The notes under the pieces are model-generated. The model saw only the letters and a program-made list of their open reading frames with translations. It did no database searches and was not told the origin of the DNA. A stretch of DNA of 64,000 nt from Paraphysomonas bandaiensis (taxonomy: Eukaryota; Protista; Chrysophyceae), in NCBI GenBank assembly GCA_965644295.1, contig CBFFRP010000128.1:1-64000 (forward strand), in the 5' to 3' direction. Every line of letters begins with the position of its first letter. Positions within the stretch are counted from its first letter, which is position 1. Position numbers and translations under genes: made by a program. Shown here in pieces: positions 28,738-59,900 of the stretch.

Positions 28738-28854
28738 GAGTGGTGTTGATAATAGATGAGTTAGAGTGATAGGGATTCAGAGGTAAGTATACCCCACCTT
28801 AAATAATATATACACACTACCACCATACCAACTCTAACCTATACCACCTCCCCA

Positions 28855-29146
28855 CATACATACATACATACATACATACATACATACATACATACATACA
28901 TACATACATACATACATACATACATACATACATACATACATACATACATACATACATACATACATACATACATACATACATACATACATACATACATACA
29001 TACATACATACATACATACATACATACATACATACATACATACATACATACATACATACATACATACATACATACATACATACATACATACATACATACA
29101 TACCTACATACATACATACATACATACCTACCTACATACATACATA
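28855..29146. repeat. (TACA)n microsatellite, ~290 bp
   Basis: Directly visible; source of the MYVC ORFs. Confidence 0.97.
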
Positions 29147-29832
29147 GCTACATACTGCTCTATCTCTATAACGTGTTGTATCTTCGCTCTGTCTGCCTTG
29201 TAGGTCACTGCCTCTTGAAGATATCTGTGTTTCGAGTGATGTTTCGATTAGGGTTATTCTTATAGTGGGTTGATATAACACATATGGAATATATTCGTAT
29301 ATATGGATGACACTAAGTACTCCAGTAGGGGTCAGTACTGACAGTACAATATCACGGCACCACTGCTGGCTCATCAGAGGTCGTTATGCTGAAGAGTGAC
29401 TATATGTAGTGCTACTGTACTTTTGCAGTCTGGTTGAGGTAAAGCAGTTGTTTGTAGTATGGAAATGTATGATTAATAGTTTATTCGTACTGATATTCTA
29501 ACGGTCGTGTGTGTTCTTCGTGACAACAGCTTCGAATTGCAATTACTTTGAAGCAGTTAATGTAGTGTGCTAGTCATGGGAATACAAGTAGGATAGAATA
29601 AGAGATAGAAACATCGAGACGCCTTTGCAATTAACGTACTGCAAGGTAATTTATATAGTAGTAGTGCTTTCATCTTACTTCTGATTTGCTCTCACTAGTG
29701 ATGTACTCTACATTTCACGTATAACATATTTTGCGTAAACAAAGCATAAGTCTAAATTCAACCTTATAAACCAATATAAAATTAGTTGCTAAATGTTGAG
29801 CAACTAGTCAAACCAACACTAGATAACAATTC

Positions 29833-30366
29833 TGCCCCATTCTGAGAGCGTACCCTAGTGAAGTGCTAGTGTTAACTAAGCTAAGTAACGTATAGATTAT
29901 TAATATAAATCTGAGCGTGTTGTTTGTGGGTCGGCACCAAGAACACTCTAGCTAGATCTACAATCTACACTATACTTGCATAGCCTATATGAGATTACGA
30001 AAAACCCCGCGCATTCTAGGGGAGGGTGGGGGGGTGGCCAATGTCACACTAGACCTATACTGAGTCATGCATGGTCACGAGAAGTCCCGCATAATCTTTG
30101 TTAGATAATAATGGGAAGATACACATGGTCCTACTAGAATCTGCGCGAATTACATATTATATAAAAGTCATGCATAGTTATGAGAAATCCCGCGTAATCT
30201 CAGCAAAGGTTAACACAGGTGGGGGAGCAACAGAATCTGCGCGTGATCTATGTGGTCTGCTACGTTGGTACACGGGTGGGTGGGTAGTAGAATCAGTGCT
30301 ATATATCGGTATTTTAGGTGGTGCACCAGCCAACCTACACTATGGCCACGCCCTCGTAATGTGGCA
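29833..30366 (+). mobile_element. TG...CA MITE copy 1 (534 bp)
   Basis: Ends TGCCCCATTCTGAG...CTCGTAATGTGGCA; flanks AATTC (left) and GATAG (right); homologous to copies at 35066 and 43327. Confidence 0.92.
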
Positions 30367-30720
30367 GATAGCATTCGCCAATTTTGAAAATTGCGAGCTC
30401 ATGGACCCCACGTCTACAGCATATTTGGTTTCGCTCGCTGTCAGTTCTGATCTCAAACTCTCCACAGTGCTTTTACGCTGTCAAATATCAGCACACAGTC
30501 TGAGGCGCTGTTGATTATGTTTCTCTTTATAAGACCCCTCTGCTTTATCTTTATCTTGAAATAACTGCTTTAATGTATTATTTCTTGTTGTTGGTCCTGT
30601 CCAGCCTCCACTGCACGTATATGCTGCCAACGCAGATTGACCATATTAGAGGTGCTCATTGTGAAAGGAATCTTCACTGGTCTTAGTTGGAGTATCACAT
30701 CTAGAGAGAGTGGTTATGTA
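30367..30720 (-). pseudogene. 5' part of a coiled-coil gene cut at the GATAG site
   Basis: Frame ...NEHL*YGQSALAAY...RLCADI*QRKSTVESLRSELTASETKYAVDVGSMSSQFSKLANAI runs into the MITE; two in-frame stops. Confidence 0.65.
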
Positions 30721-31550
30721 GATATATACGTATCTTCATTATTGTTCTCGTTATGATGAAGGAATTTAGGCTTGGTACAGGAGTTTTCGCACAAAACCCC
30801 CGATTTTATATAAATCTATAGTTTTGTTTAAAAAAATCCTACTTTGGGTTACTGTAGTGATGATCGTAGCAATATGTCGGATAGCCGGATAGCTACAATA
30901 TGCAGAGAGTGCAAGCAATAACTATATACAGTATATGTAATAATCACTCATTGGGAAGTCAGCGAATCCTCCTTCATGCTTTCGCAACTGTCCTAAGGGC
31001 ACAACTCCCCTACATTACAATAGTCAAGCCAACGGCTGGTTTGACAGAAATATTACTATATGGTGGATCAATTCGGTATTTGATCCTTGGTATAGACCCC
31101 GATTTGGATCACGGAAATGTATTATATTGCTGGTACATACTGTTCATCATATCGAGACAACATGAGAGTGTCTGCTCTTAACGGCAAATCATGTCGTTAT
31201 ATTGGTACACATTTACACTCATATCGTACAATGTATACTGCTGTATATACTACTTTTTTGAAACACTCTGTTCTAAAAAGGTAGGATTTTCCCGGTTTTT
31301 GTGTATCAAGATAATTATTTCCATCTAGTACGCACTGTACTCTGCTGTACTCTGCTGTATACGATGTATACTGCTGTATCTTTGGGTGGGTGGTATCCAA
31401 ACAAAGTCCTAAAAATGTCCAATCAACGAACCACCTGCACCAGAATCAGACATATGGATCCACACATATCCAGAATCTATCCACATACACATACATACAT
31501 GCATCACAGATCAGATCAGATCATATAACGAACTCAACTAAAGTAGCACA

Positions 31551-33605
31551 ATGACGTATGAGTATGATACAGCCGAATTGAAAGAGAATGTAAATGATAC
31601 AAGCCTGATCCCTAGAGGAATAGTGGCACAGTTCAATTCCTCTGTCTCTGAGAGCATACAGCACAGACAAGGAGCTCAGGACCCCAGACAGTGGGATGAG
31701 GACCCCAGTCAGTGGGATGAGGACCCCAGTCAGTGGGATGAGGACCCCAGAGAGTGGGATGAGGACTACAGAGAGGGAGATGAAGACCCCAGAGAGTGGG
31801 ATGAGGACTACAGACAGGGAGATGAGGACCCCAGAGAGTGGGATGAGGACTACAGAGAGGGGGGTGAGGATTACATAGTAGGGGATGAGGACCCTAGGGA
31901 GTGGGATGAGGACCACAGACAGGGGGAGGAGAATCTCAAACTAAGCTTACATGATGTCGGTATGAGCGATCAACATATAAAGGCACTCGACTATGAATCT
32001 GTTGCGGCTGATGTGCATAATGCGTCTCTCCAAAGTATCACTGGTTCGTTTACATGGACAGAATTGTATAACAATTTTGGTTCTTTTTTCCTTTCAATGG
32101 CATTCGAGAAGCGCGAAGTTATCTGCAATAAAAGCAACCCTTTACAATCTGAAGCAGTACCTAGTGGTCTGAAGGAAGTTGGCACTCCTGATATGCGAAC
32201 TTCGAAAGGACACGAGATTGCCAAGCAGAGAGAATCGGAAGCTAAGTCGTTGGCATCATCAGCCATGCAACGTGAGGGAGAGGATCAGAGGCCAGTTCAG
32301 ACAGGTCTGAAGAAAATTGGCACTCCTGATATGCGAACTTCGAAAGGACACGAGATTGCCAAGCAGAGAGAATCGGAAGCTAACTCGTTGGCATCATCGG
32401 CCATGCAACGTGAGCGAGAGGATCAGAGGAGAGCTCAGACAGGTTTGAAGAAAGATGGAACACCTGATATGCGAACTACGAAAGGACGCGAGATTGCCAA
32501 GCAGAGAGAATCGGAAGCTAAGTCGTTGGCATCATCGGCCATGCAACGTGAGCGAGAGGATCAGAGGAGAGCTCAGACAGGTTTGAAGAAAATTGGCACT
32601 CCTGATATGCGAACTTCGAAAGGACGCGAGTTTGCCAAGCAGAGAGAATCGGAAGCTAAGTCGTTGGCATCATCGGCCATGCAACGTGAGCGAGAGGATC
32701 AGAGGAGAGCTCAGACAGGTTTGAAGAAAGATGGAACACCTGATATGCGAACTTCGAAAGGACGCGAGATTGCCAAGCAGAGAGAATCGGAAGCTAAGTC
32801 GTTGGCATCATCGCCCATGCAACGTGAGGGAGAGGATCAGAGGAGAGCTCAGACAGGTTTGAAGAAAGATGGAACACCTGATATGCGAACTTCGAAAGGA
32901 CGCGAGATTGCCAAGCAGAGAGAATCGGAAGCTAAGTCGTTGGCATCATCGCCCATGCAACGTGAGGGAGAGGATCAGAGGAGAGCTCAGACAGGTTTGA
33001 AGAAAGATGGAACACCTGATATGCGAACTTCGAAAGGACGCGAGATTGCCAAGCAGAGAGAATCGGAAGCTAAGTCGTTGGCATCATCGGCCATGCAACG
33101 TGAGGGAGAGGATCAGAGGAGAGCTCAGACAGGTTTGAAGAAAGATGGAACACCTGATATGCGAACTACGAAAGGACGCGAGATTGCCAAGCAGAGAGAA
33201 TCGGAAGCTAACTCGTTGGCATCATCGGCCATGCAACGTGAGGGAGAGGATCAGAGGAGAGCTCAGACAGGTCTGAAGAAAGATGGAACACCTGATATGC
33301 GAACTACGAAAGGACGCGAGATTGCCAAGCAGAGAGAATCGGAAGCTAACTCGTTGGCATCATCGGCCATGCAACGTGAGGGAGAGGGTCAGAGGAGAGC
33401 TCAGACAGGTTTGAAGAAAGATGGAACACCTGATATGCGAACTTCGAAAGGACGCGAGATTGCCAAGCAGAGAACTGCTCAATATCCCACTGATACTTTT
33501 CGAACTCCTGTGAAGTCGAGTAAGGCTTCTCAGATTCAATCAAGCCCTGTTGGTGTGGAGCATCTTATAACGCCTGAACATGGTAGCAGTGTGAGGGGGG
33601 GATGA
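31551..33605 (+). CDS. 684-aa repeat protein: acidic 7-aa repeats (DPREWDE) plus ten 46-aa KKDGTPDMR repeats
   Basis: Intact ORF; 21-nt repeats at ~31680-31930; 138-nt repeats at ~32165-33472. Confidence 0.8.
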   Translation: MTYEYDTAELKENVNDTSLIPRGIVAQFNSSVSESIQHRQGAQDPRQWDEDPSQWDEDPSQWDEDPREWDEDYREGDEDPREWDEDYRQGDEDPREWDEDYREGGEDYIVGDEDPREWDEDHRQGEENLKLSLHDVGMSDQHIKALDYESVAADVHNASLQSITGSFTWTELYNNFGSFFLSMAFEKREVICNKSNPLQSEAVPSGLKEVGTPDMRTSKGHEIAKQRESEAKSLASSAMQREGEDQRPVQTGLKKIGTPDMRTSKGHEIAKQRESEANSLASSAMQREREDQRRAQTGLKKDGTPDMRTTKGREIAKQRESEAKSLASSAMQREREDQRRAQTGLKKIGTPDMRTSKGREFAKQRESEAKSLASSAMQREREDQRRAQTGLKKDGTPDMRTSKGREIAKQRESEAKSLASSPMQREGEDQRRAQTGLKKDGTPDMRTSKGREIAKQRESEAKSLASSPMQREGEDQRRAQTGLKKDGTPDMRTSKGREIAKQRESEAKSLASSAMQREGEDQRRAQTGLKKDGTPDMRTTKGREIAKQRESEANSLASSAMQREGEDQRRAQTGLKKDGTPDMRTTKGREIAKQRESEANSLASSAMQREGEGQRRAQTGLKKDGTPDMRTSKGREIAKQRTAQYPTDTFRTPVKSSKASQIQSSPVGVEHLITPEHGSSVRGG

Positions 33606-34046
33606 GATACTATAAAGGATGTCAATGCTTTCCTTGTGGTGGTCGAGCACCGAAATAAAGGAGGCCATTGCCGGTAATTGGCTCTGCTTCTACGTATCAT
33701 TAGTTTATAAATAAATCAAAGAGTCATAAACTGTAGAGAATCGGAAATTGCGCTTCGTAGCTATAAAAATTATACGATTATATCTATAGTGTGAGAGAAA
33801 ATATTGATACATTCAGTTTAAATAAGAATTTTATCATTAATGGGAGAATATGCATACATACAACATTAATGAGTATGTTCTCTGTGATATTGGATGATGC
33901 AGTGGTCATGTGGTTCATAGCATATGTCTTTGTCAGGGCCTCATGGATGCTGATAGGCTCAAATTATGTGCTCGACAAAGAGCGCCTGCATCAAAGAAAG
34001 TCCCATCCATGACCACCACATATGTTATGTGTTATGTCCCATGAGT

Positions 34047-34232
34047 GCACCTTGGTGCATGCAGTGACGCGGTGACACACAAGAGACTTTCGTAGCGTTA
34101 AATTATAGAATATTAGAGTTTGCACTAGTTAGTTTTTGTGGTAAATACTTGTCTAGCTTGACTAGTCTTCATCTAGCTACTAAGCTGGTACTGTCCAACG
34201 CCAAATGCTAATAAACAGACATTCAATATTCA
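34047..34232 (+). mobile_element. Degenerate non-LTR retroelement 3' end
   Basis: GCACCTTGGTGC...CACAAG...TTTCGTAGCGTTAAAT...AACGCC..TGCTAATAAACAGACATTCA, homologous to 67-250. Confidence 0.75.
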
Positions 34233-34402
34233 ATATATATATATATGTTCTATAAGTTCGATCCAACAAAACCAAAATAACAGTACTTTGAAAATACTTT
34301 CTCAGCAAATTATAGTTTGTGATAGTTTACCTGATAGGGGGGTGTCGTGGGGGTGTATATATGGCATTATGTTTTGGGGTACTAAGTATACTATATTATT
34401 AC

Positions 34403-35065
34403 TTATCCATGGATTCCATATATTATATATTTATCATAGTGTACACGGCTATAGTATCCAACATGAAGAGAAGTATAGTGTACTCGTGATATATACTGTT
34501 CACTATATTGAAAGTATCGAAAACCCGTTATTTTTATTCGCAAACAGTACCTCCTCATACAGTTCCAGTCTACTAGTTTGTTCAAGTAATTGCGACTCAA
34601 ATTTATTTCTTTCTTCTTCTTGAGCTTTCTTCATCGCCTCTTTGAAGTGTGGACATCTTACTACTTGCCAACTGTTGCAACCAGGATTAAGCGCGAAGAC
34701 TTGATATAAACGCAAATGTAGTATCTAATAGATCATATTTACATAATTCGAAATAAACTTACATCAAACTTCTCGGTCAAGGCTTGCTTTTCATCTTGTA
34801 GTAATGAAATTTGCTTAGATTTCACTTCAATCTCAGGTGACGTCTTTTCATATATGCTTCTCTGAGGCAGTCGTGATATATCCCCTACTCTTTAATTAGA
34901 CACACATTGTTATACGTCATTGTGACTGACCAGATGACGTTTTGCTCAACCACTTCACTCGTTGCTCCTGATCACTTAACTTGAGCCATAAATTGTACAA
35001 TTCTGTAGCCTACATTTCCTCCCTGTAGCCTACATCGGTCCAACTTACAGACAGCCTATGGATAG
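34403..35065 (-). pseudogene. 3' part of the same coiled-coil gene (spliced)
   Basis: IHRLS|gtaagt..ag|ATELYNLWLKLSDQEQRVKWLSKTSS|GDISRLPQRS...ALTEKFD|ILHLRLYQ...LELYEE with consensus splice sites; 3' end uncertain. Confidence 0.7.
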
Positions 35066-35565
35066 TGCCACATTCTGAGAGCGTACCCTAGTGATGTTAG
35101 TGAAGTGCTAAGTAACGTATAGATTATAAATTAAAATCTCAGCGTATTGTTTGTGGGTCGGCACCAAGAACACTCTAGCTAGATCTACACTATACTTGCA
35201 TAGCCTATATGAGATTACAAGAAACCCCGCGCATTCTAGGGGAGGGAGGGGGGGGTGGCCAATGTCACACTAGACCTATACTGAGTCATGCATGGTCACG
35301 AGAATCTTTGTTAGATAATAATGGGAAGATACACATGGTCCTACTAGATCTGCGCGAATTACATATATAAAAATCATGCATAGTTATGAGAAATCCCGCG
35401 TAATCTCAGCAAAGGTTAACACAGGTGGGGGAGCAACAGAATCTGCGCGTGATCTATGTGGTCTGTTACGTTGGGTGGGTGGGCAGTAGAATCAGTGCTA
35501 TATATCGGTATTTTAGGTGGTGCACCAGCCAACCTACACTATGGCCACGCCCTTGGAATGGGGCA
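35066..35565 (+). mobile_element. TG...CA MITE copy 2 (500 bp)
   Basis: Ends TGCCACATTCTGAG...CTTGGAATGGGGCA; flanks GATAG (left) and AATTC (right). Confidence 0.92.
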
Positions 35566-35863
35566 AATTCAACTACTGTTATACTAGTAAGAAGTAATGG
35601 AATTGTACTATGCATATATATAATATTGTGTGTTCCACATGGATACTATGTAAATGCACCCTATATCTTCGTCGCACACACTAAAACATTCGAAGAGAGC
35701 TCTAATGACCACGCTTAAGGATCTTAATTGTTAGTGCAGTAGCAACATATGTATATCACTATATCCGCAATAACAAACTCCAATGACAACTACTATTTCG
35801 TCGTAGCTACAAAAGAGCAGCATATTCATCACTGCACTACTAGGTCTGGGACAAAAAAACTAC

Positions 35864-43125: not shown

Positions 43126-43326
43126 ATCAATACTCTTGCTATATTTTCACAATGAAGAATAAATCTTTATGTCGTCTTCGGTGAAAATATAAAATTACTG
43201 TGCTCCATTCTGAGTTCATGTCCATTTGTAGTAGTTGTTATGATTAAATAAAGCACTCCATATGTAAATCCCGGTATTTCGTATATAGCATAATTCAAAC
43301 TACATCTGCACAAGCTGAGCCAATAC

Positions 43327-43650
43327 TGCCCCATTCCGAGAGCGTACCCTAGTGAAGTGCTAGTGTTAACTAAGCTAAGTTACGTATAGATTATTAATAA
43401 AAATCTGAGCGTATTGTTTGTGGGTCGGCACCAAGAACACTCTAGCTAGATCTACACTATACTTGCATAGCCTATATGAGATTACGAGAAACCCCGCGCA
43501 TTCTAGGGGAGGGAAGGGGGTGGCCAATGTCACACTAGACCTATACTGAGTCATGCATGGTCACGAGAAGTCCCGCGTAATCTCTGCAAAGGTTAGCACA
43601 GGTGGGGCACCAGCAAGCCTACACTATGGCCACGCCCTCGGAATGGGGCA
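43327..43650 (+). mobile_element. TG...CA MITE copy 3 (324 bp, internal deletions)
   Basis: TIR TGCCCCATTCCGAG...CTCGGAATGGGGCA; flanks AATAC and CATAG do not match each other. Confidence 0.9.
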
Positions 43651-44149
43651 CATAGCATATGCGATATCACTGTTCAATCTACTGCTTATGTACATGTTCA
43701 TATGGATGGATGTAACAACGTGGACATGATGCTGGACGATGTTAGTACGCACAATCCCCCTCAGCACGATCCACACACATGTACAAGCAATGCACACCCA
43801 TATGGACATACACACACACTGTGACCACAGATGGACACAGTCGTACTTTATGCTATTTTTGTTACTTTTTTTTGTATTTTCTAAAATTTTAATTGAAATT
43901 TTCACCTCCATCTCCGCACTTGCCAACCAGCAGTTTAAAAAAATAGAAGACGAAATTTTCAGATGATCTGCCGACCAACAGTTAAAATCATCGTATATGT
44001 TTTTGTATATAGCATCTTGTGTAAAGAAAAAAAGTGAGATGTGAGCTGAGGGGATTGTTACGTACACCATAAGAGTGTGTCGTGGCATAACTCTTCATCA
44101 GTATCGAGCTCCATTTAGACGGGTAGACTCTATTGAATCTTACAGGGAG

Positions 44150-59456: not shown

Positions 59457-59900
59457 CAGGGTTGCATATCAACTATAATTGCAATTATTACTTGCTGTCT
59501 CAATTTCAATTATTGCAATTATTTCGTACTAAACTATACATTACCTGCTAATATAGCTACTTCAACTGTCATTTCATTCCAGAGGCGACGGTTCATGCGT
59601 AATAACATAATTAATATTAAATGCAAGTCAGCCACAACAATCTTAGCTCTACTGAACAACCTTTCAACCTTACTGGTTGTGATATGCAAGTGCTTCATGC
59701 TGCAGAGACGAGATCGCTTCAAGACGTGCTCGCCTCCGCTGTCTGCTACCATCATTCTGAACTAGACTCGCACTGCTATCATCCATCAACGTTCCTTGCT
59801 GTACGTCCATCCATCAACTGTCAAACCGAAATGCATAGGAAGCATGGCTTCGATCTTGCATTCGGCCTTTCATATACCTCATCATCAATGTTAATCTCAA
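59457..59900 (-). mobile_element. hAT relic
   Basis: CAGGGTTGC end with AATTGC repeats; SKVERLFSRAK...LRMNRRLW motif. Confidence 0.7.

Follow-up and report, generated by a model that had tools for sequence, protein, structure and literature searches.

A circularly permuted gene segment between sister copies of a mobile element in Paraphysomonas bandaiensis, which probably entered its locus as a DNA circle

Our analyses of a 64,000-nucleotide stretch of the genome of the chrysophyte Paraphysomonas bandaiensis (contig CBFFRP010000128.1, hereafter C128, positions 1–64000; the whole of this stretch is referred to as the window) have identified a structure, at positions 29828–35570, in which two copies of a non-coding mobile element (E) enclose 4.7 kb of gene-bearing cargo. 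By alignment to an intact paralogue on another contig (C190), the cargo is shown to be circularly permuted, and its sequence indicates that the segment probably entered its present place as a DNA circle. The overall order, as read directly from the window, is x-AATTC-[M1]-GATAG-4.7-kb cargo-GATAG-[M2]-AATTC-y, where x and y are the DNA to the left and to the right of the structure and M1 and M2 are the two copies of E; within the cargo, Q and P are two parts of a gene G, V is a gene for a repeat protein and S is a spacer. The structure is located in the intergenic DNA between an SYF1-like gene and a HADHA-like gene. The explanation that we favour, with somewhat more confidence than doubt, is that a host segment of about 4.7 kb was made circular, or was otherwise permuted, and fused with the chromosome at a single lineage of E.

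The left copy of the element, M1 (534 bp, 29833–30366, plus strand), has the left end TGCCCCATT and the right end AATGTGGCA, the latter being a rare variant, and it stops one base before the end of a 535-nt reading. The right copy, M2 (500 bp, 35066–35565, plus strand), has the rare variant TGCCACATT at its left end and AATGGGGCA at its right end. The two copies are in direct orientation and are 90% identical, with several indels, and the window contains 4 occurrences of the terminal motif of E, where 0.06 would be expected. On the outside of the structure, the 5-mer AATTC (T1) at 29828–29832 is identical to that at 35566–35570; on the inside, the 5-mer GATAG (T2) is found at the start of the cargo (30367–30371) and again at its end (35061–35065). 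The original prediction for this locus had stated that neither copy has its own target-site duplication (TSD) and that the flanks match outside with outside and inside with inside, with one end variant present at both outer ends and another at both inner ends. These statements are borne out, each pair of flanks matching at 5/5 bases and the TGCCACATT variant being present at the two inner ends.

The permutation of the cargo becomes apparent from its comparison with C190. A search of the genome (62.6 Mb in 669 contigs) with the cargo finds one diverged paralogue, which is located on this contig and shows 78–84% identity. On the minus strand of C190, positions 60201–59654 match the end of the cargo (34531–35065) and the directly adjoining positions 59658–59287 match its start (30367–30737), the two matches overlapping by 5 bp. 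The junction sequence of C190 (...cagcttgttGATAGcactcgcc...) contains one GATAG, at the place homologous to window positions 30367–30371, and this GATAG lies inside an intact exon (KLASAINKLSVS) that is open across it and translates to ...SSQFTKLASAINKLSVSRAD...; beyond the junction, C190 is collinear with the cargo through the 684 amino acid (aa) repeat-protein gene as far as window position 33664. Because C190 passes from the one part to the other through a single GATAG, the end and the start of the cargo were once contiguous, and GATAG is a genuine TSD that arose when E entered a continuous exon. Contiguity of P and Q is what a circular or tandem intermediate predicts, and the order found in C190 matches exactly that.

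The exon in question belongs to gene G, a coiled-coil gene whose copy in the window has decayed and is divided at the GATAG codon, one part lying at each end of the cargo. The 5' part, segment Q (30367–30659, minus strand), is a pseudogene which, when it is read from 30659 down to 30367 and compared with the intact exon of C190, has a 1-bp frameshift and an in-frame stop. The continuation of the gene, segment P (34531–35065, minus strand), is homologous to C190 and comprises, from 35065 down to 34531, the remainder of exon 1, an intron and the exon after it, and contains an in-frame stop; the homology of gene G to C190 breaks off within an intron, and the cargo lacks the later exons. Gene V (31551–33605, plus strand), which is collinear with C190, is an intact open reading frame (ORF) of 684 aa that consists of WDE heptads and ten 46-aa repeats and has no Pfam match. 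In the short Logan contigs of four sequencing runs, which were used for checking junctions, run X18 (another culture, about 1% different from that of run X1) has a 21-nt insertion at 31915, corresponding to one extra heptad in the WDE-repeat region of V; since this insertion keeps the frame, the number of heptads in V varies between strains.

The end of V is linked to the start of P by spacer S (866 bp, 33665–34530), which has no counterpart in C190. The junction at which the permuted segment was closed must lie within this spacer. Within S there is a copy of about 200 bp (34046–34253) of an unrelated high-copy repeat, which has many matches in the genome with 72–81% identity. Contigs of three runs (X1, X6, and X18) pass over window positions 34026–34243 by joining 34025 to 34244, with 5 shared bases and a shorter side of only 24 nt, and this joint may represent an allele or a paralogous site without the 218-bp high-copy repeat of S. 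C190 itself was considered as the donor of the cargo and was rejected: its 78–84% identity to the cargo is to be set against a divergence of 4% between M1 and M2 and a mean of 8% within the family of E, so that the split between the paralogues predates this family. No donor remnant was found by way of paralogues of C190's own flanks, which match only dispersed repeats. One 2268-bp repeat on this contig (C190:62431–64699), which is present at 40 or more places in the genome with about 100% identity, is a very recently active element.

Element E is about 525 bp long and non-coding, with TG...CA ends, and its copies carry at both ends the 19-bp terminal inverted repeat (TIR) TGCCCCATTCYGAGRGCGT, for which there are 154 matching ends genome-wide. 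A 5-bp TSD is perfect in 7/25 full copies, has one mismatch in a further 6/25, and is lacking in 12/25, whereas in a shifted control, for which the right flank was moved by five bases, 0/25 copies had a TSD with one mismatch or fewer. A second census of the flanks, made from pattern matches, gave the same split, with about half of the copies lacking a TSD. The original prediction had acknowledged that its flank matches might be due to chance if the family generally lacked 5-bp TSDs; with 13/25 copies at one mismatch or fewer, E truly makes such duplications, and the two swapped 5/5 matches are therefore not chance.

Each of the two copies had been predicted to be a reciprocal hybrid of an element A (TSD AATTC) and an element B (TSD GATAG), but this proved not to be demonstrable. 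In an alignment of M1 and M2 with 16 other full copies, every difference between M1 and M2 is private to one of the two, and a subfamily test for hybrid copies found no internal A/B signal in either of them. At least 6 derived bases, spread over positions 90–501, are common to M1 and M2 and are found in none of the 16 others. The two copies differ by 20 substitutions (20/499 = 4.0%) and 9 indels, the mean substitution divergence of the family being 8.0%, and they are joined by IQ-TREE with a support of 100/97 for the full length and 99/94 for the right half; for the left half, the tree is unresolved and groups M1 with a third copy from the window (92/75). The shared derived bases, the low divergence, and the tree support thus indicate that M1 and M2 descend from one recent ancestor.

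Only the single-base variant at the ends follows the flanks. The variant TGCCACATT is present at 5 ends genome-wide as against 154 with TGCCCCATT (5/159), and of these five ends, two are the inner ends of the present structure and three are single ends of unrelated copies, no other copy having the variant at both ends. Its presence by chance at both GATAG-adjacent ends would have a probability in the region of (0.02)^2, without correction for the fact that this feature was chosen post hoc, and the occurrence of so rare a variant at both of them argues that these two ends share one event or history. The claim that a Mu-like cointegrate would not explain the swap of TIR variants is weakened by the fact that element B itself needs the same rare change at both ends, and the variant does not speak for recombination more than for a cointegrate. 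It is a matter of speculation whether repair synthesis entering both ends from the GATAG gap was the cause of the paired variant.

The third copy in the window (copy 3; 43327–43650, plus strand) belongs to the local clade of M1 and M2 and has an internal deletion, being without positions 266–483. It had been said to resemble the left part of M1 and the right part of M2. The former resemblance holds, the left part of M1 having its closest relative in copy 3, from which it differs at 7 of 249 nt; for the latter, the comparison is limited by the lack of positions 266–483 in copy 3, whose last 51 nt do not separate M1 from M2 meaningfully. The flanks of copy 3 (43321–43658; CAATAC and CATAGCAT) match those of M1 (CAATTC and GATAGCAT) at 5/6 and 7/8 bases, without homology beyond them, and the right-flank bases are host exon sequence. 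It looks as if M1 had been copied along with a few flanking bases.

In the explanation that we favour, a segment with the first exons of gene G, gene V, and the 0.87 kb spacer would have become circular or otherwise permuted, and the circle would then have fused with the chromosome at a 0.53-kb copy of E between the SYF1-like and HADHA-like genes. The resulting cointegrate would read x-AATTC-[E]-GATAG-cargo-GATAG-[E]-AATTC-y, its two copies of E being sisters, and the donor locus would have been lost through excision. A circular or tandem intermediate of the cargo is called for because x and y are presumed to have once been contiguous, P and Q are proven to have once been contiguous, and Q-V-S-P are contiguous now. 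Simple unequal exchange, inversion, and intramolecular transposition were also checked by hand, and none of them yields the observed order. The part of the original prediction that a circle, or one unit of a tandem array, was integrated is retained here in view of the permuted cargo between direct copies of E, the matching outer and inner 5-mers, and the contiguity seen in C190; its further part, that M1 and M2 are reciprocal hybrids of two distinct miniature inverted-repeat transposable elements (MITEs), is not demonstrated, and a route known from maize gives the same architecture without a circle.

The joining could have been brought about by either of two reactions. In a Campbell-type homologous recombination, the E of the circle would have recombined with a close relative in the chromosome, perhaps the very copy from which it derived. 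In a transposase-made fusion of the Mu/IS26-like kind, the chromosomal E would have attacked the circle at GATAG without being cut free, and AATTC would then be the old TSD and GATAG the new one. Within the favoured explanation, we lean very slightly toward homologous recombination. Of the features associated with Campbell-type integration, the permuted insert is present, and neither reciprocal-hybrid repeats nor a free circle or single-repeat empty site was seen; the features of a cointegrate (viz. two identical-by-descent direct copies of E with one TSD pair outside and another inside) are present both here and on contig C200.

Traces of the intermediates and of the donor were sought in the genome, in the four runs, and in metagenome contigs. 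Empty x|y and P|Q junctions are absent from the genome (with up to 3 mismatches allowed), from the joints listed for the four runs, and from the metagenome contigs (exact patterns). Neither the free circle nor the single-MITE allele that the original prediction had suggested seeking came to light through these junctions, the searches being limited to exact and near-exact matches. A second copy of the cargo or of spacer S was also not found in any of these sources, the only relative of the cargo genes being the diverged paralogue on C190. A segment that was moved fits these results better than one that was copied, because no donor, second cargo copy, second copy of S, or empty junction was found. 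The HADHA homologues place the organism among the marine stramenopiles near the chrysophytes, without a close sequenced relative. With regard to synteny, even the closest of these homologues do not exceed 82% identity, and the one contig of a relative that was compared shares the HADHA side only. In run X18, one contig of single-copy depth joins the right end of E (35567) back to its left end (29832), with few bases between and 35 nt on each side; this could be a tandem E-E junction located anywhere in that genome and is not assignable to the present locus.

Several considerations weigh against the entry of a circle by way of E. The circle is deduced from topology alone, as neither a circle nor a donor remnant nor an empty x|y site was found in these searches. 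The linkage of x, M1, and Q depends upon the assembly, because no short contig spans a whole copy of E. Nothing in the present data separates the two joining reactions, both of which need two identical inner-end changes or a cause that is linked to the event. By analogy with maize, a composite insertion would yield the same end product without a circle and, with respect to the transposase-made fusion, we know of no eukaryotic element for which a replicative DDE reaction has been established.

Composite insertion by alternative transposition, of the type described for maize Ac/Ds, is the strongest of the alternatives; it is unlikely to be the correct explanation, although its probability is by no means negligible. 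According to this scheme, left and right ends of E from two sister chromatids would be inserted together at x|y in S phase, E and both of its flanks would be re-replicated, the forks would abort, and the broken ends would be joined inside spacer S, so that no circle is formed, AATTC is the new TSD, and GATAG is the old one. The mechanism is a published one, with transposon ends and the TSD outside and permuted donor flanks joined inside (PMC4270019); it would make M1 and M2 literal sisters, and the lack of a TSD in about half of the copies suggests that aberrant events are frequent. However, composite insertion copies DNA, and hence the donor locus and donor copies of both halves of S should persist, yet the only other copy of the cargo genes is that on C190, which is without E and, at 78–84% identity, much older than the 4% divergence of M1 and M2. 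There is, moreover, no second copy of any part of S, and no P-GATAG-Q junction of the window type is present in the genome or the four runs. Later loss of the donor would still be compatible with the missing donor copy.

The arrangement seen in the window recurs elsewhere in the genome. Contig C200 has the order CTCAT-[E]-GGTAC...3.1 kb...GGTAC-[E]-CTCAT, in which the two copies of E are sisters with 96% identity, and thus the family does contain a further reciprocal swap of TSDs (outer CTCAT/CTCAT, inner GGTAC/GGTAC), for which the original prediction had suggested looking. No paralogue of the C200 cargo was found with which its order could be compared for permutation. On contig C378, two sister copies lie 12.5 kb apart and are flanked on the outside by GTTAT/GTTAT; because of a truncation of the inner left end, only the outer pair is comparable, and the interval consists of host DNA and, on the opposite strand, a gypsy element. 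The other close direct pairs of E are also sisters in the tree. The pairs on contigs C80 and C288 share left-flank sequence, that on C288 being a plain tandem segmental duplication of about 2.4 kb, and the pair on C457 shows no flank match.

A composite of two copies of E with 1.86 kb between them is present at three loci (C298:686795–689700, C281:177600–180500, and C461:50000–53000), and its inner DNA is 99% identical among them. The inner flanks of this composite are ATTAT...ATTTT, its inner ORF of more than 260 aa has no Pfam match, and diverged paralogues of this ORF are found on contigs C68 and C89. A head-to-tail array of at least 18 units of E, with a period of 568–569 bp, is present at C414:88809–98491; since GATTG precedes each left end, the unit consists of E and about 40 bp, and it appears either that a mobile element is on its way to becoming a satellite or that the array was produced by rolling-circle replication. 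In the E family, aberrant events that pair copies are thus common. It is quite unlikely that E habitually moves by a replicative, cointegrate-forming reaction of the IS26/Mu-like kind in a eukaryotic nucleus. If it did, E would fuse the chromosome with extrachromosomal circles and would act as a portable attachment site that relocates genes, and this would account for the half or so of the copies that lack a TSD, for the close direct pairs always being sisters, and for the 18-unit head-to-tail array.

The three-locus composite is also pertinent to macrotransposition, in which a pre-existing E-cargo-E unit (e.g. from the G-V locus, with one E, in tandemly duplicated form or as a dimeric circle) would have jumped into x|y and made AATTC, and to which we would give only a small chance. 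That E-1.86 kb-E units with nearly identical inner DNA are found on C298, C281, and C461 speaks for such movement, the outer 5/5 TSD fits it, and a cut-and-paste move would explain the missing donor. Nevertheless, macrotransposition only shifts the problem, as a tandem or circular precursor is still required for a permuted cargo that has GATAG at either side, and the composites at the three loci may be either transposed copies or segmental duplicates.

The integrity of the structure was checked by means of its junctions and, as the original prediction had proposed, of the depth over the cargo. The junction between x and M1 is bridged by contigs of X1 and X18 (29700–29859), and that between M1 and Q is bridged in both runs as well (30325–31063 and 30325–31075). 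A single 1777-nt contig of X18 extends from V through S and P into M2 (33444–35188), X1 covering 34350–35170, and the junction between M2 and y is bridged in X18 (35524–35690). All four junctions between the element and its flanks are therefore bridged when the two cultures are taken together, although no contig passes through the whole of E. The depth of the cargo as against that of the flanks is about 30–36 vs. 23 in X1 and 90–110 vs. 105 and 89 in X18. As the cargo depth equals the flank depth, the cargo is not an amplified circle, nor is it an array; the structure is present in single copy and is found in both cultures, which differ by about 1%.

Repeat-induced misassembly, by which two real molecules, x-E-y and a separate P-E-Q-V-S unit, would have been threaded together via the 0.5-kb repeat, is very improbable in the light of these data. 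In its favour are the lack of a short contig through a whole copy of E and the presence, genome-wide, of more than 150 ends of this family. However, V-S-P is continuous in one contig of X18, and a separate unit would hence have to be a free 5.2-kb circle, yet the depth is that of a single copy in two cultures. The assembly has contigs of more than 1 Mb, which implies reads far longer than 0.5 kb, and M1 and M2 are easily told apart by their 20 substitutions and 9 indels.

With regard to its class, E may be either a MITE-like DNA element or the solo long terminal repeat (LTR) of an element of which no full-length copies remain. Its identification as a MITE in the original prediction agrees with the 19-bp TIR and the 5-bp TSD, but TG...CA ends with a TSD of 4–6 bp are also LTR-like, and no autonomous partner with the same ends and a transposase turned up among about 45 copies and 149 ends. 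No primer-binding site (PBS) or polypurine tract (PPT) adjoins any of the copies of E examined, and the inner flanks are unrelated from pair to pair. That E might be the LTR of a copia element was first suggested by a 1496-aa copia ORF between two copies on C200, and was ruled out, as this copia has its own LTRs and is nested inside E. It is a young Ty1/copia element (C200:161467–166761), whose ORF contains the domains rve, SH3_retrovirus, and RVT_2 and whose LTRs, of 297 bp, are 100% identical, and it was inserted inside a copy of E with a 5-bp TSD. The view that the whole structure is an LTR-type retroelement, with E as the LTR and the cargo as an internal region that was reverse-transcribed from a transcript running once around a circle with a solo LTR, can draw upon the ends and the TSD of E, the direct orientation of the sister pairs, and the many copies without a TSD, which resemble solo LTRs, but it is scarcely credible given that a PBS or PPT is found next to no copy, that the inner flanks differ from pair to pair, that no pair encloses gag-pol in its own orientation (the C200 copia being nested with its own 297-bp LTRs and the C378 gypsy lying on the opposite strand), and that it would still need a circle.

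In the neighborhood of the structure, a long (TACA)n microsatellite is present at 28774–29200, about 0.6 kb upstream of the insertion site and in the upstream region of the SYF1-like gene, and no tRNA genes are found within 28–45 kb of the window.

Sequence by itself seldom reveals that a gene-bearing segment has moved via a permuted, most likely circular, intermediate. In the present case, an intact paralogue gives the uninterrupted insertion site to the base, two separate TSDs are present at the junctions, and the pattern is seen at a second locus. The event destroyed one gene copy (G) and carried its intact neighbor (V) to a new place between two housekeeping genes. The E family provides a usable natural system for studying the capture and relocation of host genes by mobile elements in stramenopile protists, and for asking whether it is recombination or a transposase reaction that returns extrachromosomal circles to chromosomes.

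Events of this type have precedents in other organisms. The colour-sidedness of cattle (in work attributed to Durkin, 2012) and a 17-kb segment of wine yeasts (in work attributed to Galeote, 2011) have both reportedly arisen by translocation via a circular intermediate. Translocation by this route and the re-integration of extrachromosomal circular DNA (eccDNA) have been reviewed (PMC9527254, PMC11879418). As in such translocations, the segment described here lies at its new site in a circularly permuted order and its original adjacency is visible in another copy; unlike in them, there is a 5-bp duplication at the opening of the circle, and both junctions are copies of one mobile element with an outer duplication of its own. 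Since the junctions are copies of E with duplications, a transposable element, and not plain end-joining, supplied the joint.

The closest architectural parallel is found in bacteria, where cointegrates and IS26 translocatable units (Tn3, Mu, and the IS6 family) have the form TSD1-[element]-TSD2-donor-TSD2-[element]-TSD1. The architecture of the present structure, with its two direct sister copies, is identical, but it is located in a eukaryotic nuclear genome and is known from its sequence architecture alone, the replicative reaction being putative. In maize, composite insertions of Ac/Ds result from alternative transposition and re-replication (PMC4270019). These share with the present structure the transposon ends and TSD on the outside and the permuted donor flanks joined at an internal junction; the maize cases, however, keep the donor locus and use two nearby elements, whereas here there is one element lineage and the donor copy was not found. 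Recombination between elements, among LTRs or solo LTRs, is a further process that removes TSDs, of which the LTR circles of yeast are said to be an example. It resembles the present case in that many copies lack a TSD and flanks have been exchanged between copies, but here both reciprocal products are present in cis around a permuted cargo, which a simple unequal exchange of two chromosomal copies cannot give. The type of event is thus already known from other organisms; the novelty lies in the organism, in proof to the base by means of an intact paralogue, in the signature of two TSD pairs, and in the recurrence of the pattern.

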